This document shows, piece after piece, positions 14,101 to 50,498 of a DNA stretch of 64,000 nt. The stretch spans positions 9,796,001 through 9,860,000 of the forward strand of contig OZ176053.1 in the NCBI GenBank assembly GCA_964247055.1, in the 5' to 3' direction. Each line of letters starts with the position of its first letter. The first letter of the stretch is position 1. The stretch comes from Paragordius varius (lineage: Eukaryota; Animalia; Nematomorpha). The position numbers and the translations under genes are program-made. A model generated the notes under the pieces. The model was not told the origin of the DNA. It saw only the letters and a program-made list of their open reading frames with translations, and did not search any database.

Positions 14101-14526
14101 ACGGTCTCATACCTAGGGCGAAAAATCGATTTAAAAAATTATTTTTGTGGACTTTGTTTTTTGAAAAAGGTGGCATTTTACGGGGGGAGCGGGTAAAAAG
14201 AGGGCCTAAATCAAAAAAGTGACTCGACCATGTTCGGCGCAATCGAAAATAAGTAAACAAAAATCATATTTGAAATTGAATGGTCCAACACGTTCTCCGG
14301 AAAATTGTCTCAAAAACACGATTTTGTGGACTTCTGTTTTTAAAAAAAACCCGTTTTTCATACGGGGTGGGCCCGAACTGGGGGCCTAATTCCAAAAAAG
14401 GGCGAAGCTATTGTCGGGGCATTCATTAATGATTATATTTTTTCGATATTTGGATTTGATTGGGTCTACCGGTTTTCCTGTACCAGATCACAAAGCCAGC
14501 ATTTTCCATTTTTATAAATATATAGA
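11154..14526 (-). mobile_element. Non-autonomous Helitron with internal tandem array (3373 bp, five 5'-end motifs)
   Basis: On the minus strand: A|TCTATATATTTATAAAAATGG at 14526, ending GAAGTCC-GAA-GGACTTC CTCGGGCTGC-GTA-GCAGCACGAG ATTCACG CTAG|T at 11154 (AT target, no TSD). 5'-end motifs at 11294, 11834, 12410, 13468 and 14526 (spacings 540, 576, 1058, 1058). Confidence 0.88.
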
Positions 14527-14806
14527 TGTCTAACTTTGATTTTGATATACATATTATTGTATTTTTTTCGATCAAAGGAATAGTAAAGTATTGTTACGCA
14601 TGACTAATCAAAAAAGATAATTTAATTTAAGAAGTAATTTTATAAATAACAATGTATCTATGTTTTTTTGACTATAATCTAATCTTATTTGTCCATATAT
14701 ATGATTATATTTATAATTTTTGCGATGGGTATCTACCACATATTTATTTAAAACACAATGTTTGAGTTGCTTTAAATCAATAACATATATCTATAATATT
14801 ATTATA

Positions 14807-17800
14807 CTAGCGTGAATCTCGTGCTGCTACGCAGCCCGAGGAAGTCCTTCGGACTTCTGGGGGGGGGGGGGGGGTTCGAAGTTTGGATTTGAATGAAAAT
14901 CAGTTTTTAGCGGGTAGCTCCTTACTCAGCATCTATCATCAAAGAAACGCTTGACTAAAATTTTTGCCTTTTAACAGGCAATACGAAAAATCTTTCTCGA
15001 ATTTTTACAGTCTCATACCGTGGACAAAAAAATACAATCAAAAAAATATTTTTGTGGACTTTGTTTTTTTTTGAAAAAAATGGCATTTTACGGGGGTAGC
15101 GGGTAAAAAGAGGGCCTAAATCAAAAAAGTGACTCGACTATGTTCAGCGCGATCAAAAATAAGTAAACAAAATTCATATTTGAAATTGAATGGTCCAACA
15201 CGTTCTCCAAAAAATTGACTTAACCCATTTTCCACACGGGGTGGGCCCGAACTGGGGACCTAATTCCAAAAAAGGGCGAAGCTATTGTCGGGGCATTCAT
15301 TAATGATTATATTTTTTCGATATTTGGATTTGATTGGGATCACCGGTTTTCCGGAAACAGTTCACAAAGTTATATGAAAAATCAGTTTTTAGCGGGTAGC
15401 TCCTTACCCAGCAGCTATCATCAAAAAAACGGTGGACTAAAATTTTTGCCTTTTAACAGGGAATACGTGGAATCTTTATTGAATTTTTACGGTCTCATAC
15501 CTAGGGCGAAAAATCGATTTAGAAAATTATTTTTGTGGACTTTGTTTTTTGAAAAAAATGGCATTTTACGGGGGGAGCGGGTAAAAAGAGGGCCTAAATC
15601 AAAAAAGTGGCTCGACTATGTTCGGCGCAATCGAAAATAAGTAGACAAAAATTATATTTGAAATTGAATGGTCCAACACGTTCTCCGGAAAATTGTCTCA
15701 AAAACACGATTTCGTGGACTTCTGTTTTCAAAAAAAACCCGTTTTTCATACGGGGTGGGCCCGAACTGGGGGCCTATTTCAAAAAAAGGGCGAAGCTATT
15801 GTCGGGACATTTATTAATGATTATATTTTTTCGATATTTGGATTTGATTGGGTCTACCGGTTTTCCCTTACCAGATCACAAAGCCAGCATTTTCCATTTT
15901 TATAAATATATAGATGAGGATAAATAATGTATTAATATCCATATATCTTTTAACATGCTATGCATATGATAGATACTCCTTACTCAGCATCTATCATCAA
16001 AGAAACGCTTGACTAAAATTTTTGCCTTTTAACAGGCAATACGAAAAATCTTTCTCGAATTTTTACAGTCTCATACCGTGGACAAAAAAATACAATCAAA
16101 AAAATATTTTTGTGGACTTTGTTTTTTTTTGAAAAAAATGGCATTTTACGGGGGTAGCGGGTAAAAAGAGGGCCTAAATCAAAAAAGTGACTCGACTATG
16201 TTCAGCGCGATCGAAAATAAGTAAACAAAATTCATATTTGAAATTGAATGGTCCAACACGTTCTCCGGAAAATTGTCTCAAAAACACGATTTCGTGGACT
16301 TCTGTTTTCAAAAAAAACCCGTTTTTCATACGGGGTGGGCCCGAACTGGGGGCCTATTTCAAAAAAAGGGCGAAGCTATTGTCGGGACATTTATTAATGA
16401 TTATATTTTTTCGATATTTGGATTTGATTGGGTCTACCGGTTTTCCCTTACCAGATCACAAAGCCAGCATTTTCCATTTTTATAAATATATAGATGAGGA
16501 TAAATAATGTATTAATATCCATATATCTTTTAACATGCTATGCATATGATAGATACTCCTTACTCAGCATCTATCATCAAAGAAACGCTTGACTAAAATT
16601 TTTGCCTTTTAACAGGCAATACGAAAAATCTTTCTCGAATTTTTACAGTCTCATACCGTGGACAAAAAAATACAATCAAAAAAATATTTTTGTGGACTTT
16701 GTTTTTTTTTGAAAAAAATGGCATTTTACGGGGGTAGCGGGTAAAAAGAGGGCCTAAATCAAAAAAGTGACTCGACTATGTTCAGCGCGATCAAAAATAA
16801 GTAAACAAAATTCATATTTGAAATTGAATGGTCCAACACGTTCTCCAAAAAATTGACTTAACCCATTTTTCACACGGGGTGGGCCCGAACTGGGGACCTA
16901 ATTCCAAAAAAGGGCGAAGCTATTGTCGGGGCATTCATTAATGATTATATTTTTTTGATATTTGGATTTGATTGGGATCACCGGTTTTCCGGAAACAGTT
17001 CACAAAGTTATATGAAAAATCAGTTTTTAGCGGGTAGCTCCTTACCCAGCAGCTATCATCAAAAAAACGGTGGACTAAAATTTTTGCCTTTTAACAGGGA
17101 ATACGTGGAATCTTTATTGAATTTTTACGGTCTCATACCTAGGGCGAAAAATCGATTTAGAAAATTATTTTTGTGGACTTTGTTTTTTGAAAAAAATGGC
17201 ATTTTACGGGGGGAGCGGGTAAAAAGAGGGCCTAAATCAAAAAAGTGGCTCGACTATGTTCGGCGCAATCGAAAATAAGTAGACAAAAATTATATTTGAA
17301 ATTGAATGGTCCAACACGTTCTCCGGAAAATTGTCTCAAAAACACGATTTCGTGGACTTCTGTTTTCAAAAAAAACCCGTTTTTCATACGGGGTGGGCCC
17401 GAACTGGGGGCCTATTTCAAAAAAAGGGCGAAGCTATTGTCGGGACATTTATTAATGATTATATTTTTTCGATATTTGGATTTGATTGGGTCTACCGGTT
17501 TTCCCTTACCAGATCACAAAGCCAGCATTTTCCATTTTTATAAATATATAGATGAGGATAAATAATGTATTAATATCCATATATCTTTTAACATGCTATG
17601 CATATGATAGATACTCCTTACTCAGCATCTATCATCAAAGAAACGCTTGACTAAAATTTTTGCCTTTTAACAGGCAATACGAAAAATCTTTCTCGAATTT
17701 TTACAGTCTCATACCGTGGACAAAAAAATACAATCAAAAAAATATTTTTGTGGACTTTGTTTTTTTTTGAAAAAAATGGCATTTTACGGGGGTAGCGGGT

Positions 17801-20800
17801 AAAAAGAGGGCCTAAATCAAAAAAGTGACTCGACTATGTTCAGCGCGATCAAAAATAAGTAAACAAAATTCATATTTGAAATTGAATGGTCCAACACGTT
17901 CTCCAAAAAATTGACTTAACCCATTTTTCACACGGGGTGGGCCCGAACTGGGGACCTAATTCCAAAAAAGGGCGAAGCTATTGTCGGGGCATTCATTAAT
18001 GATTATATTTTTTTGATATTTGGATTTGATTGGGATCACCGGTTTTCCGGAAACAGTTCACAAAGTTATATGAAAAATCAGTTTTTAGCGGGTAGCTCCT
18101 TACCCAGCAGCTATCATCAAAAAAACGGTGGACTAAAATTTTTGCCTTTTAACAGGGAATACGTGGAATCTTTATTGAATTTTTACGGTCTCATACCTAG
18201 GGCGAAAAATCGATTTAGAAAATTATTTTTGTGGACTTTGTTTTTTGAAAAAAATGGCATTTTACGGGGGGAGCGGGTAAAAAGAGGGCCTAAATCAAAA
18301 AAGTGGCTCGACTATGTTCGGCGCAATCGAAAATAAGTAGACAAAAATTATATTTGAAATTGAATGGTCCAACACGTTCTCCGGAAAATTGTCTCAAAAA
18401 CACGATTTCGTGGACTTCTGTTTTCAAAAAAAACCCGTTTTTCATACGGGGTGGGCCCGAACTGGGGGCCTATTTCAAAAAAAGGGCGAAGCTATTGTCG
18501 GGACATTTATTAATGATTATATTTTTTCGATATTTGGATTTGATTGGGTCTACCGGTTTTCCCTTACCAGATCACAAAGCCAGCATTTTCCATTTTTATA
18601 AATATATAGATGAGGATAAATAATGTATTAATATCCATATATCTTTTAACATGCTATGCATATGATAGATACTCCTTACTCAGCATCTATCATCAAAGAA
18701 ACGCTTGACTAAAATTTTTGCCTTTTAACAGGCAATACGAAAAATCTTTCTCGAATTTTTACAGTCTCATACCGTGGACAAAAAAATACAATCAAAAAAA
18801 TATTTTTGTGGACTTTGTTTTTTTTTGAAAAAAATGGCATTTTACGGGGGTAGCGGGTAAAAAGAGGGCCTAAATCAAAAAAGTGACTCGACTATGTTCA
18901 GCGCGATCAAAAATAAGTAAACAAAATTCATATTTGAAATTGAATGGTCCAACACGTTCTCCAAAAAATTGACTTAACCCATTTTTCACACGGGGTGGGC
19001 CCGAACTGGGGACCTAATTCCAAAAAAGGGCGAAGCTATTGTCGGGGCATTCATTAATGATTATATTTTTTTGATATTTGGATTTGATTGGGATCACCGG
19101 TTTTCCGGAAACAGTTCACAAAGTTATATGAAAAATCAGTTTTTAGCGGGTAGCTCCTTACCCAGCAGCTATCATCAAAAAAACGGTGGACTAAAATTTT
19201 TGCCTTTTAACAGGGAATACGTGGAATCTTTATTGAATTTTTACGGTCTCATACCTAGGGCGAAAAATCGATTTAGAAAATTATTTTTGTGGACTTTGTT
19301 TTTTGAAAAAAATGGCATTTTACGGGGGGAGCGGGTAAAAAGAGGGCCTAAATCAAAAAAGTGGCTCGACTATGTTCGGCGCAATCGAAAATAAGTAGAC
19401 AAAAATTATATTTGAAATTGAATGGTCCAACACGTTCTCCGGAAAATTGTCTCAAAAACACGATTTCGTGGACTTCTGTTTTCAAAAAAAACCCGTTTTT
19501 CATACGGGGTGGGCCCGAACTGGGGGCCTATTTCAAAAAAAGGGCGAAGCTATTGTCGGGACATTTATTAATGATTATATTTTTTCGATATTTGGATTTG
19601 ATTGGGTCTACCGGTTTTCCCTTACCAGATCACAAAGCCAGCATTTTCCATTTTTATAAATATATAGATGAGGATAAATAATGTATTAATATCCATATAT
19701 CTTTTAACATGCTATGCATATGATAGATACTCCTTACTCAGCATCTATCATCAAAGAAACGCTTGACTAAAATTTTTGCCTTTTAACAGGCAATACGAAA
19801 AATCTTTCTCGAATTTTTACAGTCTCATACCGTGGACAAAAAAATACAATCAAAAAAATATTTTTGTGGACTTTGTTTTTTTTTGAAAAAAATGGCATTT
19901 TACGGGGGTAGCGGGTAAAAAGAGGGCCTAAATCAAAAAAGTGACTCGACTATGTTCAGCGCGATCAAAAATAAGTAAACAAAATTCATATTTGAAATTG
20001 AATGGTCCAACACGTTCTCCAAAAAATTGACTTAACCCATTTTTCACACGGGGTGGGCCCGAACTGGGGACCTAATTCCAAAAAAGGGCGAAGCTATTGT
20101 CGGGGCATTCATTAATGATTATATTTTTTTGATATTTGGATTTGATTGGGATCACCGGTTTTCCGGAAACAGTTCACAAAGTTATATGAAAAATCAGTTT
20201 TTAGCGGGTAGCTCCTTACCCAGCAGCTATCATCAAAAAAACGGTGGACTAAAATTTTTGCCTTTTAACAGGGAATACGTGGAATCTTTATTGAATTTTT
20301 ACGGTCTCATACCTAGGGCGAAAAATCGATTTAGAAAATTATTTTTGTGGACTTTGTTTTTTGAAAAAAATGGCATTTTACGGGGGGAGCGGGTAAAAAG
20401 AGGGCCTAAATCAAAAAAGTGGCTCGACTATGTTCGGCGCAATCGAAAATAAGTAGACAAAAATTATATTTGAAATTGAATGGTCCAACACGTTCTCCGG
20501 AAAATTGTCTCAAAAACACGATTTCGTGGACTTCTGTTTTCAAAAAAAACCCGTTTTTCATACGGGGTGGGCCCGAACTGGGGGCCTATTTCAAAAAAAG
20601 GGCGAAGCTATTGTCGGGACATTTATTAATGATTATATTTTTTCGATATTTGGATTTGATTGGGTCTACCGGTTTTCCCTTACCAGATCACAAAGCCAGC
20701 ATTTTCCATTTTTATAAATATATAGATGAGGATAAATAATGTATTAATATCCATATATCTTTTAACATGCTATGCATATGATAGATACTCCTTACTCAGC

Positions 20801-23800
20801 ATCTATCATCAAAGAAACGCTTGACTAAAATTTTTGCCTTTTAACAGGCAATACGAAAAATCTTTCTCGAATTTTTACAGTCTCATACCGTGGACAAAAA
20901 AATACAATCAAAAAAATATTTTTGTGGACTTTGTTTTTTTTTGAAAAAAATGGCATTTTACGGGGGTAGCGGGTAAAAAGAGGGCCTAAATCAAAAAAGT
21001 GACTCGACTATGTTCAGCGCGATCAAAAATAAGTAAACAAAATTCATATTTGAAATTGAATGGTCCAACACGTTCTCCAAAAAATTGACTTAACCCATTT
21101 TTCACACGGGGTGGGCCCGAACTGGGGACCTAATTCCAAAAAAGGGCGAAGCTATTGTCGGGGCATTCATTAATGATTATATTTTTTTGATATTTGGATT
21201 TGATTGGGATCACCGGTTTTCCGGAAACAGTTCACAAAGTTATATGAAAAATCAGTTTTTAGCGGGTAGCTCCTTACCCAGCAGCTATCATCAAAAAAAC
21301 GGTGGACTAAAATTTTTGCCTTTTAACAGGGAATACGTGGAATCTTTATTGAATTTTTACGGTCTCATACCTAGGGCGAAAAATCGATTTAGAAAATTAT
21401 TTTTGTGGACTTTGTTTTTTGAAAAAAATGGCATTTTACGGGGGGAGCGGGTAAAAAGAGGGCCTAAATCAAAAAAGTGGCTCGACTATGTTCGGCGCAA
21501 TCGAAAATAAGTAGACAAAAATTATATTTGAAATTGAATGGTCCAACACGTTCTCCGGAAAATTGTCTCAAAAACACGATTTCGTGGACTTCTGTTTTCA
21601 AAAAAAACCCGTTTTTCATACGGGGTGGGCCCGAACTGGGGGCCTATTTCAAAAAAAGGGCGAAGCTATTGTCGGGACATTTATTAATGATTATATTTTT
21701 TCGATATTTGGATTTGATTGGGTCTACCGGTTTTCCCTTACCAGATCACAAAGCCAGCATTTTCCATTTTTATAAATATATAGATGAGGATAAATAATGT
21801 ATTAATATCCATATATCTTTTAACATGCTATGCATATGATAGATACTCCTTACTCAGCATCTATCATCAAAGAAACGCTTGACTAAAATTTTTGCCTTTT
21901 AACAGGCAATACGAAAAATCTTTCTCGAATTTTTACAGTCTCATACCGTGGACAAAAAAATACAATCAAAAAAATATTTTTGTGGACTTTGTTTTTTTTT
22001 GAAAAAAATGGCATTTTACGGGGGTAGCGGGTAAAAAGAGGGCCTAAATCAAAAAAGTGACTCGACTATGTTCAGCGCGATCAAAAATAAGTAAACAAAA
22101 TTCATATTTGAAATTGAATGGTCCAACACGTTCTCCAAAAAATTGACTTAACCCATTTTTCACACGGGGTGGGCCCGAACTGGGGACCTAATTCCAAAAA
22201 AGGGCGAAGCTATTGTCGGGGCATTCATTAATGATTATATTTTTTTGATATTTGGATTTGATTGGGATCACCGGTTTTCCGGAAACAGTTCACAAAGTTA
22301 TATGAAAAATCAGTTTTTAGCGGGTAGCTCCTTACCCAGCAGCTATCATCAAAAAAACGGTGGACTAAAATTTTTGCCTTTTAACAGGGAATACGTGGAA
22401 TCTTTATTGAATTTTTACGGTCTCATACCTAGGGCGAAAAATCGATTTAGAAAATTATTTTTGTGGACTTTGTTTTTTGAAAAAAATGGCATTTTACGGG
22501 GGGAGCGGGTAAAAAGAGGGCCTAAATCAAAAAAGTGGCTCGACTATGTTCGGCGCAATCGAAAATAAGTAGACAAAAATTATATTTGAAATTGAATGGT
22601 CCAACACGTTCTCCGGAAAATTGTCTCAAAAACACGATTTCGTGGACTTCTGTTTTCAAAAAAAACCCGTTTTTCATACGGGGTGGGCCCGAACTGGGGG
22701 CCTATTTCAAAAAAAGGGCGAAGCTATTGTCGGGACATTTATTAATGATTATATTTTTTCGATATTTGGATTTGATTGGGTCTACCGGTTTTCCCTTACC
22801 AGATCACAAAGCCAGCATTTTCCATTTTTATAAATATATAGATGAGGATAAATAATGTATTAATATCCATATATCTTTTAACATGCTATGCATATGATAG
22901 ATACTCCTTACTCAGCATCTATCATCAAAGAAACGCTTGACTAAAATTTTTGCCTTTTAACAGGCAATACGAAAAATCTTTCTCGAATTTTTACAGTCTC
23001 ATACCGTGGACAAAAAAATACAATCAAAAAAATATTTTTGTGGACTTTGTTTTTTTTTGAAAAAAATGGCATTTTACGGGGGTAGCGGGTAAAAAGAGGG
23101 CCTAAATCAAAAAAGTGACTCGACTATGTTCAGCGCGATCAAAAATAAGTAAACAAAATTCATATTTGAAATTGAATGGTCCAACACGTTCTCCAAAAAA
23201 TTGACTTAACCCATTTTTCACACGGGGTGGGCCCGAACTGGGGACCTAATTCCAAAAAAGGGCGAAGCTATTGTCGGGGCATTCATTAATGATTATATTT
23301 TTTTGATATTTGGATTTGATTGGGATCACCGGTTTTCCGGAAACAGTTCACAAAGTTATATGAAAAATCAGTTTTTAGCGGGTAGCTCCTTACCCAGCAG
23401 CTATCATCAAAAAAACGGTGGACTAAAATTTTTGCCTTTTAACAGGGAATACGTGGAATCTTTATTGAATTTTTACGGTCTCATACCTAGGGCGAAAAAT
23501 CGATTTAGAAAATTATTTTTGTGGACTTTGTTTTTTGAAAAAAATGGCATTTTACGGGGGGAGCGGGTAAAAAGAGGGCCTAAATCAAAAAAGTGGCTCG
23601 ACTATGTTCGGCGCAATCGAAAATAAGTAGACAAAAATTATATTTGAAATTGAATGGTCCAACACGTTCTCCGGAAAATTGTCTCAAAAACACGATTTCG
23701 TGGACTTCTGTTTTCAAAAAAAACCCGTTTTTCATACGGGGTGGGCCCGAACTGGGGGCCTATTTCAAAAAAAGGGCGAAGCTATTGTCGGGACATTTAT

Positions 23801-26596
23801 TAATGATTATATTTTTTCGATATTTGGATTTGATTGGGTCTACCGGTTTTCCCTTACCAGATCACAAAGCCAGCATTTTCCATTTTTATAAATATATAGA
23901 TGAGGATAAATAATGTATTAATATCCATATATCTTTTAACATGCTATGCATATGATAGATACTCCTTACTCAGCATCTATCATCAAAGAAACGCTTGACT
24001 AAAATTTTTGCCTTTTAACAGGCAATACGAAAAATCTTTCTCGAATTTTTACAGTCTCATACCGTGGACAAAAAAATACAATCAAAAAAATATTTTTGTG
24101 GACTTTGTTTTTTTTTGAAAAAAATGGCATTTTACGGGGGTAGCGGGTAAAAAGAGGGCCTAAATCAAAAAAGTGACTCGACTATGTTCAGCGCGATCAA
24201 AAATAAGTAAACAAAATTCATATTTGAAATTGAATGGTCCAACACGTTCTCCAAAAAATTGACTTAACCCATTTTTCACACGGGGTGGGCCCGAACTGGG
24301 GACCTAATTCCAAAAAAGGGCGAAGCTATTGTCGGGGCATTCATTAATGATTATATTTTTTTGATATTTGGATTTGATTGGGATCACCGGTTTTCCGGAA
24401 ACAGTTCACAAAGTTATATGAAAAATCAGTTTTTAGCGGGTAGCTCCTTACCCAGCAGCTATCATCAAAAAAACGGTGGACTAAAATTTTTGCCTTTTAA
24501 CAGGGAATACGTGGAATCTTTATTGAATTTTTACGGTCTCATACCTAGGGCGAAAAATCGATTTAGAAAATTATTTTTGTGGACTTTGTTTTTTGAAAAA
24601 AATGGCATTTTACGGGGGGAGCGGGTAAAAAGAGGGCCTAAATCAAAAAAGTGGCTCGACTATGTTCGGCGCAATCGAAAATAAGTAGACAAAAATTATA
24701 TTTGAAATTGAATGGTCCAACACGTTCTCCGGAAAATTGTCTCAAAAACACGATTTCGTGGACTTCTGTTTTCAAAAAAAACCCGTTTTTCATACGGGGT
24801 GGGCCCGAACTGGGGGCCTATTTCAAAAAAAGGGCGAAGCTATTGTCGGGACATTTATTAATGATTATATTTTTTCGATATTTGGATTTGATTGGGTCTA
24901 CCGGTTTTCCTGTACCAGATCACAAAGCCAGCATTTTCCATTTTTATAAATATATAGATGAGGATAAGTAATGTATTAATATCCATATATCTTTTAACAT
25001 GCTATGCATATGATAGATACTCCTTACTCAGCATCTATCATCAAAGAAACGCTTGACTAAAATTTTTGCCTTTTAACAGGCAATACGAAAAATCTTTCTC
25101 GAATTTTTACAGTCTCATACCGTGGACAAAAAAATACAATCAAAAAAATATTTTTGTGGACTTTGTTTTTTTTTGAAAAAAATGGCATTTTACGGGGGTA
25201 GCGGGTAAAAAGAGGGCCTAAATCAAAAAAGTGACTCGACTATGTTCAGCGCGATCAAAAATAAGTAAACAAAATTCATATTTGAAATTGAATGGTCCAA
25301 CACGTTCTCCGGAAAATTGTCTCAAAAACACGATTTCGTGGACTTCTGTTTTCAAAAAAAACCCGTTTTTCATACGGGGTGGGCCCGAACTGGGGGCCTA
25401 TTTCAAAAAAAGGGCGAAGCTATTGTCGGGACATTTATTAATGATTATATTTTTTCGATATTTGGATTTGATTGGGTCTACCGGTTTTCCCTTACCAGAT
25501 CACAAAGCCAGCATTTTCCATTTTTATAAATATATAGATGAGGATAAATAATGTATTAATATCCATATATCTTTTAACATGCTATGCATATGATAGATAC
25601 TCCTTACTCAGCATCTATCATCAAAGAAACGCTTGACTAAAATTTTTGCCTTTTAACAGGCAATACGAAAAATCTTTCTCGAATTTTTACAGTCTCATAC
25701 CGTGGACAAAAAAATACAATCAAAAAAATATTTTTGTGGACTTTGTTTTTTTTTGAAAAAAATGGCATTTTACGGGGGTAGCGGGTAAAAAGAGGGCCTA
25801 AATCAAAAAAGTGACTCGACTATGTTCAGCGCGATCAAAAATAAGTAAACAAAATTCATATTTGAAATTGAATGGTCCAACACGTTCTCCAAAAAATTGA
25901 CTTAACCCATTTTTCACACGGGGTGGGCCCGAACTGGGGACCTAATTCCAAAAAAGGGCGAAGCTATTGTCGGGGCATTCATTAATGATTATATTTTTTT
26001 GATATTTGGATTTGATTGGGATCACCGGTTTTCCGGAAACAGTTCACAAAGTTATATGAAAAATCAGTTTTTAGCGGGTAGCTCCTTACCCAGCAGCTAT
26101 CATCAAAAAAACGGTGGACTAAAATTTTTGCCTTTTAACAGGGAATACGTGGAATCTTTATTGAATTTTTACGGTCTCATACCTAGGGCGAAAAATCGAT
26201 TTAGAAAATTATTTTTGTGGACTTTGTTTTTTGAAAAAAATGGCATTTTACGGGGGGAGCGGGTAAAAAGAGGGCCTAAATCAAAAAAGTGGCTCGACTA
26301 TGTTCGGCGCAATCGAAAATAAGTAGACAAAAATTATATTTGAAATTGAATGGTCCAACACGTTCTCCGGAAAATTGTCTCAAAAACACGATTTCGTGGA
26401 CTTCTGTTTTCAAAAAAAACCCGTTTTTCATACGGGGTGGGCCCGAACTGGGGGCCTATTTCAAAAAAAGGGCGAAGCTATTGTCGGGACATTTATTAAT
26501 GATTATATTTTTTCGATATTTGGATTTGATTGGGTCTACCGGTTTTCCCTTACCAGATCACAAAGCCAGCATTTTCCATTTTTATAAATATATAGA
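14807..26596 (-). mobile_element. Non-autonomous Helitron with 11.8 kb internal array (twelve 5'-end motifs, one 3' end)
   Basis: CTAG|T at 14807 with the same twin hairpin and 16 G on plus; A|TCTATATATTTATAAAAATGG at 26596. Internal 5' motifs at 15914, 16494, 17552, 18610, 19668, 20726, 21784, 22842, 23900, 24958 and 25538. Confidence 0.88.
14875..26596. repeat. Higher-order tandem repeat: 1058 bp unit = 580 bp + 478 bp homologous subunits
   Basis: The ORF track shows identical ORFs every 1058 bp (16955, 18013 ... 24361). The anchor ggcattttacggggg recurs at 15560, 16140, 16720, 17198 and 17778. There are twelve 580-type and ten complete 478-type subunits, nearly identical. Confidence 0.97.
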
Positions 26597-29500
26597 TTCC
26601 CGATTTCGGGGAAAATATTAGAATATTGGGTTTTATTTATTAGTTTCTCAAATGGGCGTCTAGTCTAACTTGTGCCAGATTTATTTAAATAAGGATATTC
26701 TTATATAAGTTATTGAGTTTACACCTAAAGTGACATAAATATTGGTTTTTCAAAATGCTGTTTGTTTAGTTTTAGACAAATTCTATGATATGATTGAAAG
26801 CCCATTGAATATTTATTTTGTTGCTTGGAAACTTTTTCATCATATAAAATTATATTTAAACTTAACTTTTAAATCTTGAATGTTCCGATTTTAGTAATAT
26901 CTTTACCAAGTTTTTTTTATCGAAGATAATGCTATACTATTTATACAATAAATAGCAACACATATTAAACAATTTGTAGTTAATTTATTCACTCTGCACC
27001 ACTTCTCATAATTAATAATAATATGGTTGAGTTAAAATGAAAAATGTTGAAAAAAATTATAACTTTATATAAAAAATTATCCGTCAATTTAGGCATCCAA
27101 TAATCCCCCTTATTCAACTTTCATACTCTGCTTTTATTTTTTAATTTATATTTACTCTTCCCAATGATTGATTGATGATGATTTTTCATAATTCACTTTT
27201 TGTTTTAATATAGTGAATGGCTCCTTGCATAGGTATGTTTGTTTGTTTTGTATATAGTTAATTAATTAATATTACAATATTGACTTTTAAATGTTGACTC
27301 TATAATTAAATAAAGTTGAAAAATTACCTAATTTTTAGGTTTTTTTTTCCAAAACATACATAAATCATGTGATCTTACCAAATTAATTTCGAGGGTTTAG
27401 TTAAATGTCCGAGACTGTGACCGATTATAATAACCGGCCAAAAAAACTCGCATAAAAGTTTTTTTAGTGATAATAAAACTTTAAGCTAATGAAAATGATA
27501 GAAATATTTTTATTAATTAACTAACAATTTTGAGCTCTAATTTGTTTTTGCAGCGCAACATTTTTCAACAGGTGTTTAACCCAACAACCCTGGCTTTAAA
27601 TTTTTATAATATATTTTTTAATATTTTTCAAGTTTTCGCAGATTGGCTTCTTTCGCTAAAAAACCTTATTTTTTATCTAAATATATAATTTTTTTGTATT
27701 TTATGGTGATAGTAATTGATATCTATTGATTGTGCTGGCTGAGTAAATAATATATTGTCATCTAGTTAATAAAAAAATAACCACATGTTTATCAAAATTA
27801 TTTTTATTGTACATTGTATAATAAGGATGTAATTATTAATTAAATTATATTTTAATATAACAATGGATATTGTTAAATAATGAAGAACACATATTAAAAG
27901 TTATATTTATATTTAACAATATGATGACATCTATATTGTTAGGACTCGTGTCAAGTGTTATATAAGTAAAAAATTCCCTCCTCAAAATTTAATATTTATT
28001 TCTTTTATAAATTTTATTTTAATTTTTTTTCTTTTTTATTGGCTCTATTATGACACGATACATCTTTGCACCATAGCAATCAATAGTTTTAATTAAAAAT
28101 TTGGAATACAAAATAATTTTTAGCTCAAAATCGGATGGTTTTTATATCCATTCTTTTAACCTTTATAATAACCATTATTTAAAATCAAAAAATCATTAGT
28201 TACTTCTATAAAGTATCTTTCTATTAGAGATCGTCCTATCCTTTACACATACAATAAATATTACTGTCATCACAGCCTTTTTTTATTGTAATCATTTTTA
28301 GATTGGAAAAAAGCGCCCAACTTACTCATCATAAAAACACCATAATTATTTATTTTATTGCAAAACTTTTATTTTTTACAATCTCGAATCGAAATAATTT
28401 ATTTGAATAATATATGTTGGAAAGTATTGTATTATAATTTGGCGGCATATTGCTTCATTTTATTCTTCTGTGCCGAGAAATTATTGCTATTAACAATTAT
28501 ATTTTCTCTATTATCCATCGTATAATTATGGTTTATTTTATTGTTATCTTACACTCATTGTGCTCTTTATATTAGCAAATAGTATATTCTAAAAAGTTCT
28601 AAAAGAAGAAGGAAAAAAAGCATTCATCCAGGTATCAAATTTCATCTTGAGATTTTTATCATTTTAATTTATATTCCACTTTGAGTTGTTGAAATTAAAT
28701 CAAATAAACTAATTTTTTTTCCGGTTAAATCAATTTGATTCGATTCGATTGACAATCAAGTCTCCTATAAATGCTTTATTAAGTTTGTTATAAATGTGAT
28801 CAGTTAATAGATAATTACTTATTTTTAGGATGGTTAGGTTTAACTAGGATACCTTGAGCGTAACTATTACCAACTTCAAAATTTTGAACTTTATCTCGTC
28901 TACTGAATAACTATTGTAGTATAATTTTTGTCCTAATAATGAATATTTTTGATCAAAATATAATCGTAATCTTAATTTTATATAGAAAATATAGTAAATA
29001 TAGCTAAGTTTGTTTTCTAAAAACAACTTAAGTTTTACCGTGAAGGAATGTCTTTATCAGCCGGTCAAATCTTTATTTTTTTCAAAAATTTAATTGTCAA
29101 CAGATTTTATTTATACTTTAAATAATCAAAATTTATTTCATACTAAATTCATTCCCTAGAAATTTTAAAGCTAAGTGCCGATTTAAACGTTTACCTAAAT
29201 TTGACAAATTAAATGTATCAAACATCTTGAAAAAAAAACGATAATATAGCATATAATTTAAAAGAAACTGGTACAATATTGAGACTGTGGTTAGCAAATA
29301 CCAAATTCAATACCGTTGGATTTTTAATATTCACACCAGAATGTTATATTTTTAATTACCAAGCACACTACTTTTGCAAGCCAGCTAGTGGTCTTATTTT
29401 GATTTTTTGATTTTATTTTTTAATTGCTACTAGAAAGTTATTAATTATTAGAAAATATCATATGCAACAAAGGGAAGTATTATTGGCTTATAGTATTTTT

Positions 29501-37600: not shown

Positions 37601-39056
37601 AACTTTTGATATGTATATAGAAACTAATTGATGACGTTACAAGTCTCACAATTCGTACATATCCTCAATTCCTGGCCCGGTATAATTGCATTGGCGAAGA
37701 GATTAAAGAAAATTTACAAATTTTGAGCAATAATGGCGGCAACAATGAAAGTTCACAAATGTTTGATAATAATATGTTGGCCCGAAGAGAACGCATAGCG
37801 CATATACAAGTTTGGCAATAGCATTTTTTTGAAAATTTAATAATTTTTCAGTGTTTGAAAATATTATTTTTATGTTTTGGGTGTTTATTAACTAAAACCA
37901 TGTAATGATTATACAGGGCAAATTAGAGATGCTAAAAACCAAAGCACATAAATTTTACAATCAACGGGAAGAATTGTTGTTAAATACATCATCCGAAAAT
38001 ACTACTTTTCAAAGGTCTGTCTTACACAATCTAGGGTCAAAAACCACAAATAGAAGTGAAAGAGACGAAACTTTTGCAAATTATTACACTAATAATAGGG
38101 ATAGAGTAGAACATAATAAAAATCTACACCAAAATTACAATAATAATAGATTTGATAAAAACTATTTACATTATTCTCAAAATGTAAGAAATGGTTATCA
38201 TAACTCGGATGAACACGAAAACCTTAATGCGTCAAAACCCAATGGTCACAATACTGATGCTAATAATACTAATTTAAATTCTCAAAATTATAAATTTGAT
38301 CACAAGTTGTCTAACACATATCACGAATCTCAAATGAATCAAAACTCTAAAAACAACTTTATATTAGTTGATAAGAACGTAAATTATGATAGAGCTGGCA
38401 TAATATACAGCAATAATTCCGAAAGCCCTGTTACCCTTAAACGCATTAGGATGGGCCATCATGGGATAAAACAGAATTTCGATCATTTACCTTCCACGCT
38501 AAGGCGATCACTTAAAAACCGATCACCACAAGGTATCATATTTAGTGTGTATGTACATCATGCATTTTGTTTCTATTTTCTTAATTTACAAGGCCAATTA
38601 AAATTTTGAGAATTTGGTTAAAAATTATTTTCAATGACATAATATTATTATCTCACATGCAAAACCCGTATGCATTTTTATTACACTTAAACCTAAGTTG
38701 GGATCTCTTCTGCAAAAGCCTATGTACTAGCTAGAATTATAGACCAAAATTTATGTTTTCTCCATTTTAGAAGTGTCTTTTGAATCCGATTGCCATATAC
38801 CACGCGTGTTGCGCCGAGCCCATAATGCTAATGAATATGAACAAAAACGGAAAAACCGTTCACAAAGTGTCCCGCCTCCTGATACGGTGGAGGAAATGCT
38901 TTATGAACGAAAAAGCCCACCAGATGCATCAAATAATCGACCAAATGCACAAAGTGACCACGCAAATATACAAAATGAAAGGGTAAATGATTTTACTAAA
39001 ATACAATATTTATGAGTGTGCCATAAAAATTATACCTGTAATATAATAATTGGTTT

Positions 39057-39098
<42 letters not shown>

Positions 39099-42000
39099 TT
39101 ATCTATGCTTATTCGATTTTTCGTTTGCCACATTGATAACCCTTTTTTTCATGAAGAATCGGAAATCATCAATAACGGTGAATAAAGGATCCATGTATGA
39201 TACAACTTTTCAACCCTATTCCGCCCAACCTACTCTGTCTAATCCACAATCATACCCCATGTATATCAGTTATCAAAATAACCAAACCACAGCTACCATG
39301 GAATCAACTCATAATAATCACAGTAATGCCAAATGTGGCGAATCGAAATTGACTCCCCCACAAACTTATTATCATGTCAACTGTGATAAAAATTTACCCA
39401 ACCAATTTTATTCCAATGAGGGTCGTCGTCCTTCCTGCAGTAAAGTCTCAGAATTTATTGAGCACACAGTGGATCGAAATGGACAAATTGATTCAAGCAG
39501 GCATCAAACTAACGTATATTATATGCGTGCTTATGGTCGCTCACCATCAATCCCGATATCTCCCAAATCACCCAATCATGAACGGGAGGAACGTAAATGT
39601 TCAATAAATGGTAGAAATTTTCAAACTAATTATCCACAACTACATCAGCTTAATGCAAACTCTCCCATCGTTGAAACGTATAAAGATTTGAATGTTTTAT
39701 CCATCAAAGAAACACCCATTGAGCAAATATCAGCATATCCCCCGAACAATTATTATCAAGCACAGCAAACGCAATCAACCACCCCTGGAAATCAAAGTTA
39801 CCCAACTTTCTTTTAATATCTTGTTTGACAAATGTGTATAAGTGTGGTGTGGTAAGTTAGATTCATTAATATTTTCCAAATTTGAATGCCTTTAAAAACT
39901 CTCAAAAGGGATGGTTTCTATCGGGAAAAATAGCTTTTCAGTTAGTTCCGAAGTTAATGAATGTAGCCCACGCCCTATTGAAAAATATTTTGACATAAAT
40001 ATATAATGTTTTAATAGAACAATTTAGGAGTTATTTATACTTACTGACAATTTTTTGTCAAGTGTATGGGTTTGTTAATATTATCATAAATTATTTAAGC
40101 GTTTTTTATCAAGACATTTTATATTTTTATCATAGCAAAAACGGTCATCTTAGTCGAACCCAAATGCAAAACGGCTGGGGGAAAAGGAGCGAATCCAAAG
40201 ATATTTACCAAAGAATCCTCCCCATGTAGCTTGGCAAACAGTGTTTACAGCGCTGAAATCGGTTTAGAAACGATAGATCAAGAGGTTATGCTCTTTTTAT
40301 TATATTGACTCTCGTTTAGTTTTGAAGCAATAAAACGATCAGATTTGATATAACATTCAAAAAAATAAAACTATTATCTTGTTGTCACACACAAGATTTT
40401 TTATAATTACTGCGAGTCCAGTAAATAATGAAGCTAATATTGTCAAATTATCCTTAATATTAAACCACAACTTATTTAACACTTTACATATGATTTTTTG
40501 ATTCCAACTTAAAATAAATTAATAAACAATAACCTATATATATATCGTTTTAGTTGTCAAGGCCACAAAAGATAAATATCCCTGAGCGGTTACGTGACGA
40601 AGAACTCGTTTTGTGCGAATTGATGGCCAATCAGGCTAACCTTACACCAGCCCACGGTCAAGCTGGTTTTGATTCGTTAACTCAAACACAAATTAACGAA
40701 TACATTTTGGCTCAAAAGAATTATGCCACTTCATGCGGTATTTTTCGATTATTGAATTATAATTATCTTATCAACAAAAATTAATTGTTAGGCACTGTTA
40801 TTATTTCACTTTGGGTTATGGGGTTTTAAGGTCAAATGTAATGCTAAAATGCTAATTCGAAAGATATGAACCTTTAATTAAAAACAGAATTATTACTTTC
40901 GGGTAAAATTTGTATATTGCGATTAATTTCAAGCGCTTTTTAGAATGTAATACTTTTTACAAATAACTCTCATGCTACTATACCCTTTTTTTATTTAAAT
41001 CTTCCGTTTTTAATTGATCGGACATAATACATAAATGGTAAAAACCAATTATCATGTACAGGTTTAGATTCCCCAAAACAGCACAGCACAAGTGCCAGTT
41101 TATCTTTGGATTCATCCACACCTCCTTTGGCTAACAAAGCACATAATCATCACTCTACCAGAAACAATGAAAGCGTTTTTGCACCTCTTAAGGTACAAAT
41201 ACCCCCACCTCCACCCCTCCTGCATTCAAATGATAATAAATTTCGTACTATACAGAATAGCAATAAATATAACGATCAAAGATCACTTACTACTACTGAT
41301 TACAATAATAACAATATTGAAGCATATAGGGGTGATAAAATATTATCGCCCCTGTATAAAGATGAAAAAATGAATCACACGAACCATGTAAGTCCTGAGG
41401 AAAAGGAAACGAAAGAACGTGTAAAAGCAGCAATCAAAAAAGAATACTTAAAAAATTTGTTATCCAATTATGGGTAAATTTGATTGTATTATGCATAAGG
41501 GGATCTTAATTTAAAATTCCGACCTAATTTTTTTTTGTAATTGTGTAGAGAAAAGTTTTTTACTAACTTTATTTGGAATATTATCTTTTGTCTTTTAACT
41601 TTAAAGATTTTATATTTTGCTGAAATTGAGAATTTTTGTCAATGTAAGACATGGTTTAATCTTACGTTAAATATCTTTAGTTTGTTGATTTATGTTATTA
41701 TTTTATTTTTAAGGTGGTGGAACGCTTAAACATTAGTTTTTATAAGGTTTAAACATTTTTGTTGGCCAATTTTTTGATGTGGCATATATGTTATAACAAT
41801 AGTTTATTATAAAAAAATATCCAAGGGAAAGGTTTAGAATTATATGGCTTACATTTGAAAGTAATAAATAAAAGGTCTATACTTTAATCTATATAAAAAT
41901 GCATGCTTTGTACTAAACGCTAAGTTTCTTTTAACAGATCTCACGATTTGTCCCCTCAAATCGCACATGGCAGAACGACATCATCACCGTATATCCGTTC

Positions 42001-42508
42001 AAGTCTTTCCTCTTCAACAAATGACTCTCCTAACGTTAACCATCAAAGACTTGGGACTGATTTCCCATGCGTTGAATCAAATATGAATAATAGTTACCAT
42101 ATGAATGGTGGAGATAAAACATCACCCAATATTAATAATAATAATCAAAGTCAATCTAAAGATTTTACGGGTGAGAGGGCCCTTTCCCATAATGGACACT
42201 CCAACTCATGGTTAGAGGAGGAACGATGTCGCCGGGAAAAATTGTTGAATCTCAACGAATTACTTGCCAAAGAAGTAGCCGCTAAAACACGAAAAATGAT
42301 GCTAAATAATGCCCTAAGTCGGGAGAATGCCGCTGCTAATAATGAGACCTTTTCCTCCTTATCATCACCCCCAGACCAAAGTGGATCAAAGAAATTTGAA
42401 AATTATATTCCTTTTACCACCACCGTTATAGAAGAGCAAAACAATAGTCCAAGGACAGATATTGATCAATATCTGCATTATAATTTTTCTGAATCTAATG
42501 GGTTTTAA
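31601..42508 (+). CDS. PH-domain and coiled-coil scaffold protein, PLEKHA5/6/7 (kramer)-like; spliced, 5' end unresolved
   Basis: Phase-consistent GT-AG exons: 31601-32136, 33674-33833, 34165-34237, 34314-34763, 34866-35085, 35503-35827, 36058-36218, 36845-37064, 37223-37360, 37621-37809, 37917-38532, 38771-38982, ~39157-~39796 (boundaries less sure), 40136-40284, 40554-40737, 41062-41473 and 41938-42508 (TAA). PH strands RENWLFFL/EKVPIIHWVKKWVILDEVSLLIF and PH helix MATMNGAERDEWVKTF; coiled coils. LSRPQKINIPERL, SPEEKETKERVKAAI and RREKLLNLNELLAKEVAAKTRK resemble remembered PLEKHA6/7 C-terminal motifs. Confidence 0.7.
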
Positions 42509-46000: not shown

Positions 46001-48023
46001 TTAATGTATAGGGTTTTCTTTATCAAAGGATTTTGCGAAAATCTCTTATAGGAAAATGATCAAAAGTAAATTAGTTGAGCTTACATTATGCTTGTATCAA
46101 TACATTTCCAAAAATATCTAATTATCGGAAAACAAAATTAGGTTTGTATTTAAAAAGCGTCTTCCCTTATTTAGATTTAAATTAAGCCAAATTTAAATGA
46201 GGATAACACAAATAAAAAATTAATTAAATATAAGTAGGATCATTCCATCACAACGTAAAATATTAGCCGAAAATTAAGATGTTCAAAGGAGGAAAAGTCG
46301 AAAAGAATCATTTATAAACAATGGTGACCGCTCCTTTTAATAGTGAAGTTGTTTGAAGTTCCCTCGCCCAATGTGAATTGTTTGGATTACATAATTGTTA
46401 CTTTTCAACAATTATCCATTTCCAAGATTTCGTTCCTTAGGATGAAAGAAAATAAATGGGTAAAGAACAATCCAATCAATATGGAAATATAAATTGTATA
46501 ATAAATTTATTAAGGGCCATTAATTTCTAGAAATATAAAATTTTGATTCAATTTGTTATTAGTATAAAATATTTTTTTATATTCAACCGTAACGAATTTT
46601 GTTTTGTCCACAGTTTGTTGAAAATAAAATTAAAAATAAATAGGTATTTATTTCTGAAAATTAATATAAATTAATTTTGGTTTATATTAAAATACATGGT
46701 ATTCAACAAAATAAAGATAAAATGTTGAATATAATGGTATTAATTTGTATTAAGTAACTTTTCAAAAACCCGAAATTCATATCGAAAACTTAAAATCAAA
46801 TTCCCAAGATTATATATAATTTTCGTGCTTAAAAATTTAATGGGACTTCGAATATTATTATTCAGCTGTTTGGCGCTTAATATGAAAATTGAAAACAATG
46901 ACCGTTGACTTTCAATAACAGTTTAAAATATATTTTAACTGATGTCTGAAACCTTTAATCCTATTATTATATGTTATGCTTTTACAAAAATTTATGCAGA
47001 AGCTTTATGCAATTCATAAAAATAAAAAAGTTATAAATAAGTAAAGTCAAAATTATGGTTTTGGAAAATGCTGATGGCAGCTTTTTTCATATGATATATC
47101 ATTCATTCGTTTATGACCACAATTTACATAAGATTGGGTTGTGTATAAAGACGGTTAAAACCTAAGCTTAATTATAACAAACTAATATATTTTTTTTACT
47201 TAATTTATGAATAATTTCCTAGCCTTCAAAATGTTAGCTTATGAATAGGGAATCGTTTTTAATGTGTTTATTTATATTATAAAAATAAGTAATATTGGGC
47301 CCTGGACGAGACATTTATATACCATATTAGGACACGGAAGGGAGTCGATAAATTATTTACATACATCTAATTAATAAATATTTTATTGATCATACCTTTT
47401 CTGACAAGACTTATAAGCACGTAAAAAAATGCTTAACAAAAAATGAAATCGTATATTTTAATTTATATCAATTAAAACATCTTTTCCCTTCATTTTGGAA
47501 TTGTTGGGTAGCAAAATTTGGCTTCTTCGCTTAAATTTACAATATTAGCGTTGACATATGTGTAATTTAAAATATTTCATAATCTTTTTTTAATCAAAAA
47601 CCAGTTAATCCTTGCAATGCATGCAGGTAGGGTGCAAGAGATATAAAGTTAGGCATAATTATGTATGCAACTAAAATTAAAGCCATACAAAACGCGTAAC
47701 TAAATTAATATTATTATTATTATTAGGAGATTTTAGAGAAGAAGACAGAGCGAGAGAAGGTGCTTCGAACATAATGTGTCAACATGAAATGGCAACATTA
47801 ATCGTGAATCCTTGCTTGTATATTTTAGATTTTAAGAAAGAATAATTACATATTTCTTTGATATAATCTTAGTGGGAAAACACACACACTAATATCTTGA
47901 AATAAATAGGTTTGTCTTTTAAATCTTATAAAGAGTCGTGATATTAAAAATTTTGCACATATTTTTTAAAACTCTTTAACTATACTTTATTATCGTTATT
48001 ATTCTAAATTATATCGTCATTTA

Positions 48024-50382
48024 ATGTTGCTTAAATTGTATCATATACCGCTCATATTTATATTGGCTTTGATTGGATTCAAACCATTAGAAGTAAATGG
48101 TAAACCCCTTTTAAGTTACTATCCATGGTATGTCTTAATTATAATTTAACCCATATAGAAAATATTTTAAATATATAGTACAATTTTGCACATATAAATA
48201 TTTTAAATATATAATGTTACATTGCCAATTTGGATATCCTTATGGTTTATACACAACGTTAAGTGATTGATGCCGGTATACCGTAAATTATGTCTTTCTA
48301 TCATTATAAATGTTTAAATTATCCACTTTTTATGGGTAAATTTTAAATTAATTACCTATTTATTTATTTTAGGGGTTCTTTTGACCTTTGAATACTTATT
48401 CTAAAAAATAAATTATGTAATGCAGAATCACTTAGATCCATTATCTTTTTTTAATGATATTAATTTTAGCATGTTTTATAAATTTCTAACAGATAATAGT
48501 GGACCGTGAACCGCTCCTTAAATATGTAGCTAAATATTTTAACAATTATTTATAATTAAGTATATAATAAAAATATGAAATAAAAATCAAATTTTGGTAA
48601 TAATTAATATATGGTCCCATTTTTGTGGTAAGATATTGATCATGAGGATCATTCATAATTGACATCGGTTATTTTTTGATCAGCAATTTTAATAATTAAC
48701 ACATATTTAGCCTTTAATATTCAACGTTAAAACAAACAAATAGTTATCTTAAGGTTAAAAATTTTTTTATATATTGATTCTGTCGTATCAGCCAGTTGTT
48801 TTTAGCTCTATTTTTGAACCTTATGCTGTTAATCGGTAAAATTTTACATATATTGTCACAATTATTTTATATAAGCTTTTAATTGTTAATGCTGTATGTT
48901 AATTAGATATATAATGTTTGTAAAATTTCAATGGCCACAAATAATTTTTATGGTGGTTTTTTTAATGGTTTATTGGATTATTCCCCTGTTGTAAACCTAA
49001 AAATGTACTTTAATTTTTTAAACTTTGATGTAAAACAGCCAACTTTAATGATAAAAATATAATTTTTGGCCGGTCACCATCCCAATATAAATATGAACAT
49101 GCTGCTTTTAATATTAGTTGACGCATTTAGCAACTGGGAAAATGCTACAATTGAAGTTTTACAAATTTCTAATATTTGGTGTTATACAATGCATATGTAA
49201 TTAACAGTCCATCACCCTTTGGGTTTATATCACAAACCGATTTAAAATTGGAATATCTAAAAAAGTATAAGGTTTTAAGCCGAATTTAAATATCCTTTCA
49301 TTAGTTTTTTAAACGTATTATACTAATTTTTTTATAGAAATAAAAAATTGTAATAAAATCCTCATCTAAAACTTTTTGCGGCCATTTTCAACGCAAATAT
49401 ATGCACAATATGGAAATGTAATTTAAAACAAAAAAGCTTTCAGGCTACGTTTTAGCAGCAAAAAACTTGATATATTTTGATTTTAACATCAGATGGTCGT
49501 TTCGATCGTATTTTGGAGCTGTCCCAATTTTACACTCTAGAAGTCATAAATCTGTAAAAAATGTAAGATTTTTTTATCAAATAAATGAGAACAATGTTGA
49601 TAATAAATTTTAATTAAAATCCCTTTAGAACTGTAGTTTTTTTACAAAATTGAACTCTGGGATATAAAACTATTCCAATATGTAAACTAGGACAAAAAAG
49701 AGAAAGGTAATGAATTGCTAAACATTGATAATGAATGATAAGAGAGGTTGTCTATTGCGGTTAGGTGTTAAATAAAATTTTAAAAATCTTACACTCCACA
49801 AATCGACTTGGATAAGATAAGGGTACCTCAGGTCTGTTTATAACCAAATTATAAAAAGCAATATAACAAAAATTGCATATTTTTACATATCAGTAAAAAG
49901 AGTTATAACTTTTTTAAAAATTTATTCTCAAATGCATCCATCCTTGGTATTATATAAAAATGCAAAAACGACCCAAAAATATGTTATTACATTATTTCTC
50001 TGAATATAAAGAACACCTCTAATTTTCGGAAAGCAAAAGGAAAAATCAAATAAATACGGCCAATGTTATCTTACTGGTCAATCATTAATAATAATTTATA
50101 ACCACTAATTTATACCCGAATTATATCCTATTTAGGGATCAAGAACCTATGGGATTATCATATAAAGAGAAAAGGTATTTATAATACTTAAATTATGTCA
50201 AAAGTTTTTATACAATATTAAATTGTTTAATGTCCTAACTTAGACTTCTGGGACTAGATAGAGATCACTCCGCTGCACAAATGGCTCTCCTTCAAACAGG
50301 GTTAGGCGCGGCTAGTGCGGGAGGTCCTGGAAAGAAACGATACTATCCTCAAGATGATTTTCATGTGGATAATTATATTTAG
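48024..50382 (+). CDS. DH31-like (calcitonin-family) neuropeptide precursor, 93 aa minimal three-exon model
   Basis: Exons 48024-48127, 50136-50174 and 50244-50382, all joins phase 2, GT-AG. Protein: MLLKLYHIPLIFILALIGFKPLEVNG/KPLLSYYPWDQEPMGLSYKE-KR-LLGLDRDHSAAQMALLQTGLGAASAGGP-G-KKR-YYPQDDFHVDNYI*. It has a signal peptide, dibasic sites and an amidation Gly, and aligns to insect DH31 ([31 protein letters not shown]-amide). Extra phase-2 exons in the 2 kb intron are possible. Confidence 0.78.
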
Positions 50383-50498
50383 TAGTGAAAGACAAATTCT
50401 TTATTATATATAAAATAAGTGTTTGTGGTTAAAATATATTTATCTATCTATATCATGATTTAAAATCATATATGTATATATATTACAATCATTAAATA

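Follow-up and report, generated by a model that had tools for sequence, protein, structure and literature searches.

The DNA analysed here is a stretch of 64,000 nt (the window) from the genome of the hairworm Paragordius varius (Nematomorpha; contig OZ176053.1, positions 9,796,001 to 9,860,000), to whose coordinates all positions below refer unless a contig is named. On its forward strand we recognized three small exons that in our reading (to which we assign a probability of roughly 0.7) make up an endogenous nematomorph neuropeptide gene of the DH31 type, i.e. of those calcitonin-like peptides that lack a disulfide and conserve an amidated C-terminal proline (PMC12638048). DH31 is reported from most protostome lineages (PMC13311285), so that its presence in a hairworm would be unsurprising in kind; the candidate would add one more member to an established family, from a previously unstudied phylum.

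The peptide frame and its likeness to DH31

The firm part of the model is exon 3 (Table 1), which by itself translates as LLGLDRDHSAAQMALLQTGLGAASAGGP-G-KKR-YYPQDDFHVDNYI-stop inside an open frame of 47 codons (counted between stops), and which offers in succession the last base of an arginine codon, a peptide of 28 residues, an amidation glycine, KKR, a C-terminal peptide of 13 residues and TAG. The DH31 landmarks listed in the original prediction, together with the length of 28 residues and the missing Cys pair, can all be read in this exon (which encodes no Cys anywhere), and the processing sites it had described (KR ahead of the peptide, G-KKR behind it) are present in the predicted model. 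With its C-terminal AGGP followed by G-KKR, the frame carries the Gly-X-Pro end considered a conserved and activity-critical mark of calcitonin (CT)/DH31 peptides (PMC3961327), and amidation is predicted from the sequence.

The original prediction had staked itself beforehand on a similarity to DH31 above background, and such a similarity was found. With a profile made from an alignment of seven published (and exclusively pancrustacean) DH31 peptides, the frame of exon 3 scored highest (16.5 bits; window-scale E 7e-4) of all 2038 fragments obtained from the six frames of the window, the runner-up (4.8 bits) following at a distance of ~12 bits. The 29-mer composed of the peptide and its glycine reached 18.6 bits, a score attained by 0/20,000 free shuffles of the same residues (maximum 17.6 bits) and by 3/20,000 shuffles in which GGPG was held fixed; because the shuffles almost never match the real score, we consider that the order of the residues, beyond their Gly/Ala/Leu-rich composition, is DH31-like. 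The alignment to the profile is collinear (profile positions 4-32), covers 28/29 positions with a single one-residue gap, retains 11 of the 16 columns that are invariant among the seven peptides, starts exactly after the basic site and stops exactly at the amidation glycine before KKR. Moreover, the 84 nt that code for the peptide have a G+C content of 56%, as compared to 25% in the flanks, 25% in intron 1 and 17% in intron 2 (values for the complete exons 1, 2 and 3 are 31%, 33% and 45%).

Furthermore, the site appears to be unique in the genome, which was covered in all genome-wide scans to the extent of 110.6 Mb in 44 contigs. A DNA pattern scan for GGPG followed by two AAR/AGR codons found 16 sites, ten of which were translated; seven of these belong to a single repeat (KKWHFTGGPGKK-type), the others being a collagen, a Gly-rich frame and the candidate; five of the six untranslated sites have letters identical or nearly so to the same repeat. 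The candidate is the sole GGPG-dibasic site that follows a DH31-like sequence (the inspection covered all 16 sites but contig 5:5648537). With the peptide itself, neither a PDB sequence search nor a search for look-alikes in the ESM Atlas produced a usable result, and no text containing fragments of it turned up in the literature.

Several observations weigh against a DH31-type gene. Extrapolated to the whole genome, the sequence score alone corresponds to an E of ~1, and neither insect DH31 nor the DH31 profile retrieved anything from the genome at E<=10 in a search that starts from a word-based first look. Exon 3 had no match in Pfam, an exhaustive protein search retrieved only three repeat proteins with scores summed over their repeats (a 45-aa query needs ~41 bits in this search, so that distant DH31s lie beyond its reach), and a word-index search, whose scope was proteins of 25-79 aa and left precursors outside, was blank. 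The peptide also departs from the pancrustacean-derived DH31 signature (PMC7212414), XXDXGLXRGXSGXXXAKXXXXXXXANXXXGP-amide, with which it agrees at 8 of the 13 fixed positions (G5, L6, R8, S11, A16, A25, G30 and P31) and disagrees at D3, G9, G12, K17 and N26; the invariant D3, G9, G12, K17 and H18 are all lost (K17 and H18 being replaced by Leu), and with 28 residues in place of 31 it is three short at the N-terminus, i.e. at the activating end. Divergence from DH31, middle included, had been part of the original prediction, and the extent of it is borne out by an identity of 15/28 to the insect consensus 31-mer. As for the upstream exons, ~1 signal-peptide-like ATG is expected by chance per 5 kb of such A+T-rich DNA, and an in-frame linker exon of 39 nt is an easy chance finding.

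From these points one could construct a chance or decayed open frame, namely a G+C-rich remnant that resembles DH31 by accident and yields no prohormone: the genome-scale E, the ease with which a start and a linker exon are found and the lack of relatives of exon 3 in the protein searches (word index of 25-79 aa; exhaustive search with its ~41-bit bar) all lend themselves to it. We regard it as unlikely, however, because no free shuffle reaches the real score, the match is bounded exactly by Gly-KKR on one side and by an arginine preceded by an AG acceptor on the other, one would not expect neutral DNA to contain an 84-nt stretch of 56% G+C amid surroundings of 25%, and the frame is intact in a genome that retains a putative cognate receptor and the processing enzymes (see below). 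Since the score of the sequence, taken by itself, falls short of significance at the scale of the genome, the case for a DH31-type neuropeptide rests on the processing sites, the base composition and the uniqueness of the site together.

A genuine secreted and amidated peptide that is not a DH31 orthologue, but belongs to a lineage-specific or another family (e.g. PDF-related) and has converged on a Gly/Ala/Leu-rich sequence, is in our view improbable. It would account for the incomplete signature, the length (28 vs 31 residues) and the diverged middle; the LLGL start recalls the LLSL/ILGL core of PDF, and short peptides hold little phylogenetic signal. Such a convergence would nevertheless have to produce a collinear alignment over 28/29 positions with one gap and an AGGP-G end, and it would leave the DH31R/CALCR-type receptor of this genome, which needs a ligand, with a Cys-pair CT-type peptide as the only other candidate found. 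PDF itself was rejected as an identity for the candidate, as PDFs have ~18 residues, an NSE(L/I)INS start and an Ala-amide end, and share with it only the LLGL/LLSL core (Drosophila PDF).

Exons, introns and junctions

Upstream of the peptide, the gene model consists of predictions, and here too our reconstruction coincides with the original one in the coordinates of three in-phase GT-AG exons, in the junction codons and in the total of 93 codons. With GT/AG borders and compatible phases, the exons (all on the + strand) join into 282 nt (93 codons plus a stop) across predicted junctions, at which the codons TGG (W, exon 1/2) and AGA (R, exon 2/3) would be assembled. Exon 1 begins in the manner of a signal peptide, as had been proposed (MLLK, a hydrophobic stretch of 15 residues, LYHIPLIFILALIGF, and KPLEVNG; predicted), with a likely cut after G26. 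Exon 2 encodes (W)DQEPMGLSYKEK(R), i.e. the K of KR plus two bases of the R codon, and creates a KEKR site ahead of the peptide; this middle exon is required by the model because exon 1 joined straight to exon 3 gives TGA, and it is at the same time its least secure part.

The candidate donors (GTATGT and GTATTT) and acceptors (TTTAG and CTTAG) resemble those inferred in a calcitonin-receptor-type gene of the same genome (donors GTAAAT/GTATAA/GTAGAA, acceptors TTTTAG/ACAG/TATAG/TGCAG). In a crude rule-based scan, the ATG at 48024 was the sole signal-peptide-like one on the + strand within 5.2 kb upstream of exon 3, the window-wide count being 35 out of 2246 ATGs (0.27 per kb per strand). A TATAAA is found 92 nt 5' of this ATG, a position to which little meaning can be attached at such a base composition. 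With the locus 47950-50450 as query, all three exons were single copy genome-wide, and the sole repeated DNA was a dispersed element inside intron 1 (40 scored places genome-wide at 70-83% identity; 1556 first-look candidates); a repeat within the predicted intron, flanked by single-copy exons, is as expected of an intron.

Given that exons 1 and 2 are only predicted, exon 3 might instead form part of a different and larger gene, in which GPGKKR would be no processing site. We hold this to be extremely unlikely, since the frame of exon 3 spans just 47 codons between stops, TAG follows 13 codons after KKR, and no open reading frame of >=100 aa exists at 42.5-58.1 kb on either strand.

Elsewhere in the window, open frames of 186-234 codons without a Pfam match lie on the + strand at 37905-38609, 39133-39816 and 41948-42508. 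A tandem array occupies 11154-26621, with open frames of 106-107 codons recurring every 1058 nt (e.g. 16187, 17245, 18303 ... 25231), and a non-LTR (long terminal repeat) retrotransposon is present at 4629-7349 on the - strand, with an intact frame of 906 codons (AP-endonuclease, E 2e-12; reverse transcriptase, E 1e-39).

A second peptide gene, receptors and processing enzymes

The same genome contains a frame of the disulfide calcitonin type (contig 5; Table 1), which reads KKR-SPNLACIINGGLTHSCDHQEMSEAMRRLKYISAIHGP-GKR, has the CxxNxGLxxxCD core found in NLP-73 and in shrimp calcitonin, and ends in a predicted Gly-Pro-amide; we take it as the probable orthologue of NLP-73/calcitonin in the worm. 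The DH31 profile gives this Cys-pair frame -2.2 bits, as compared to 18.6 bits for the candidate, a result that bears out the specificity for DH31 claimed originally, and because of which we treat the two genes as distinct types. The converse identity, i.e. the candidate as a Cys-pair calcitonin-type peptide, was rejected, as the pair of N-terminal cysteines (~9 residues apart) with its core C-(x)2-N-[AG]-G-L-[ST]-x-x-C-D is absent and exon 3 is free of Cys. Protostomes are held to have inherited one CT-type and one DH31-type gene (PMC12638048), and the hairworm genome would, on the evidence of these two frames, hold both paralogous types.

A DH31-type receptor, which the original prediction had recommended looking for, was sought in genome-wide scans with the class B G protein-coupled receptor domain and the hormone-binding ectodomain (HRM), followed by a reading of the exons. 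A multi-exon class B1 gene on contig 6 carries in its ectodomain the motifs H-P and W-S-N-Y-T; H-P and W-S/T-N-Y-T are common to DH31R/Hector and human CALCR, and absent from Caenorhabditis elegans SEB-2 (PMC3961327). Its second ectodomain exon (NGTWFRHPITQRIWSNYTTC) scores 33 bits to human CLR (CLR/CTR) vs 22 for PTH1R, the next family, the exon of transmembrane segment 3 scores 50 bits to CTR vs 31 for the next family, and the exon of transmembrane segments 6-7 matches CLR and CTR only. These features point to the calcitonin/DH31-receptor type, and the gene may belong either to the DH31R clade or to the protostome CTR clade (PMC12638048). Other class B1 receptor genes (PDF-receptor-type, 'cluster B' and CRF-receptor-like) are given in Table 1.

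Genes for the enzymes that mature such prohormones are present as well. Exons for a peptidylglycine alpha-amidating monooxygenase (PHM) were detected with the Pfam model of the C-terminal domain (that of the N-terminal domain missed them at E<=0.001), and a further copper monooxygenase gene resembles dopamine-beta-hydroxylase. Proprotein-convertase P-domains were found on contigs 4 and 3, the former ~39 kb downstream of the peptide gene.

Combining the gene model with this inventory, we propose that the three exons would be spliced into the message of a prepropeptide of 93 residues, from which the signal peptide would be removed and which prohormone convertases would cleave behind KEKR and either ahead of or inside KKR. 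A carboxypeptidase would then trim the basic residues, and peptidylglycine monooxygenase would use the exposed glycine to yield a Pro-amide. The resulting 28-residue amide may be a ligand of the class B1 receptor that the worm itself encodes on contig 6; as in other animals, the Gly-X-Pro-amide end of the peptide would occupy the ectodomain, and its N-terminal part would activate the transmembrane core. The amide may also act on the products of the PDF-receptor-type genes; in Drosophila, DH31 acts on the PDF receptor.

Table 1. Positions of the candidate gene, its parts and the related genes (window coordinates unless a contig is given)
Feature	Position	Strand	Description
Exon 1 (predicted)	48024-48127	+	104 nt; ATG...CCATG, donor GTATGT, ends in phase 2; signal-peptide-like segment, then propeptide start
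Intron 1 (predicted)	48128-50135	+	2008 nt; borders GTATGT...TATTTAG
Dispersed repeat	49184-49729	.	~530 bp, within intron 1
Exon 2 (predicted)	50136-50174	+	39 nt; acceptor TATTTAG, reads GGATC...AAAAG, donor GTATTT
Intron 2 (predicted)	50175-50243	+	69 nt
Exon 3	50244-50382	+	139 nt; acceptor AACTTAG, ACTTCTG...TAG
Predicted mature peptide	50245-50328	+	28 aa; monoisotopic mass of the amide 2689.397
Gly amide donor and KKR convertase site (predicted)	50329-50340	+	from the reading of exon 3
AATAAA	50495-50500	+	113 nt past the stop; weak, chance ~1 per 360 nt in such A+T-rich DNA
Calcitonin-type (disulfide) peptide gene	contig 5, 7231762-7231869	-	query C. elegans NLP-73; one match, E 0.29, full-length
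Calcitonin/DH31-receptor-type class B1 gene (putative)	contig 6, ~6,915,700-6,921,700	+	multi-exon; HRM exons upstream
PDF-receptor-type genes (two)	contig 3, 8.7237-8.7301 Mb and 8.0759-8.0785 Mb		G-W-T ectodomain motif
Class B1 receptor, 'cluster B'	contig 2, 5.5356-5.5387 Mb		W-x-N-Y-S; best matches glucagon/PTH-like
CRF-receptor-like class B1 gene	contig 5, 2.871 Mb
PHM exons	contig 4, 12375554-12376655	+	the exon at 12.3756 Mb matches only PAM in PDB, 41 bits
Proprotein-convertase P-domain exon	contig 4, 9885459-9885641	+	44 bits; ~25 kb past the window end
Second convertase P-domain	contig 3, 7.7085 Mb

Host, phylum and known systems

The original prediction had raised the cross-activation of host receptors in case the source proved to be an arthropod parasite, and the source appears to be one. 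The mitochondrial genome, represented by contig 44 (15.7 kb; six in-frame TGA codons in COX1), contains many perfect inverted repeats with arms of up to 208 nt and no spacer; coding palindromes in mitochondrial DNA have been described for Nematomorpha (PMC6649704, PMC10380579), and only for them. The animals of this phylum also make a different role for the peptide conceivable. Hairworms manipulate their arthropod hosts, and in insects the DH31 and/or PDF receptors govern the water balance, the motility of the gut, activity and the preferred temperature. The peptide could be a mimic secreted into the insect host and directed at its DH31/PDF receptors, or the gene could have been acquired from the host; besides the parasitic habit of the source, DH31-like peptides in the venom-gland transcriptomes of centipedes, spiders and a caterpillar (PMC13311285) speak for it. 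We judge this highly improbable, given that the peptide of the main host orders, a constant 31 residues in Polyneoptera, is almost invariant (PMC7179676) and the worm peptide shares 15/28 residues only, that the N-terminal GLD is absent, so that neither a recent transfer nor close mimicry is indicated, that the introns are of worm type and intron 1 houses a worm repeat, and that the worm's own matching receptor suffices to explain the gene. Transfer from the host was rejected on the first and third of these grounds (i.e. the identity to the invariant host peptide, the worm-type introns and the intronic repeat). It is likewise very doubtful that the hairworm amide adds, inside the insect host, to the water-seeking manipulation as a parasite 'doppelganger' hormone (in place of or besides its role as an internal hormone).

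If the endogenous DH31-type reading is correct, its significance would lie in the evolution of the family. The searchable literature yielded no survey of nematomorph neuropeptides, and the nematode literature knows only the disulfide CT-type NLP-73 and a 'cluster A' receptor, with no DH31R orthologue (PMC3961327, PMC7615250, PMC11004728). Nematomorpha would then have retained the ancestral calcitonin/DH31 system of protostomes in both its arms (both peptide types and a receptor with DH31R/CALCR motifs), and the loss of the DH31 arm would be placed within, or at the base of, Nematoda. Moreover, the candidate (28 aa, amide, 2689.40 Da) is cheap to synthesise, and could be tried against the receptor of the worm and, with much slimmer prospects, against the DH31 receptors of crickets or mantids.

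Among the known systems, the closest likeness of the candidate is to the DH31/CT-DH of arthropods (Rhodnius and most Polyneoptera; PMC3843727, PMC7179676), with which it shares the Cys-free sequence and collinear landmarks (LGL-R--S--Q-A----GL-AA--AGGP), the Gly-Gly-Pro end with its amidation glycine, and (in the predicted precursor) KR before and a basic cluster after the peptide, of which a single copy would be situated mid-way in a short precursor. It differs from them in that it lacks residues 1-3 and with them the invariant Asp3 (28 vs 31 residues; lengths of 33-34 residues occur among the published sequences of other arthropods), that G9, G12, K17, H18 and N26 are replaced and one residue is deleted before AGGP, and that its predicted precursor is shorter (93 aa, as opposed to 107-178 aa) and has KKR in place of RRRR. 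A divergent DH31 paralogue of krill, Euc-CLDH33 (PMC3749230), has Ser in place of the usual Asn close to the C-terminus (AAS-AGGP), as does the candidate, and in contrast to the latter has 33 aa and keeps D3, G9, G12, K17 and H18.

In the sister phylum, the C. elegans peptide NLP-73 (CTDH-1), of the disulfide calcitonin type, activates SEB-2 (DHRR-1) (PMC7615250, PMC11004728), and this pair resembles the hairworm system as a calcitonin/DH31-family system with an amidated Gly-Pro end. The counterpart of NLP-73 in P. varius would, however, be the contig-5 gene and not the candidate, and SEB-2 falls in 'cluster A' without the DH31R/CALCR ectodomain motifs (PMC3961327), which the contig-6 receptor has. 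Lastly, the venom-gland 'doppelganger' peptides (PMC13311285), whose function there is untested, resemble the candidate as DH31-like peptides of animals that interfere with arthropod physiology; whereas these are venom-gland transcripts, nothing in the candidate points to host-directed secretion, and its presumptive receptor is present in the genome of the worm itself.

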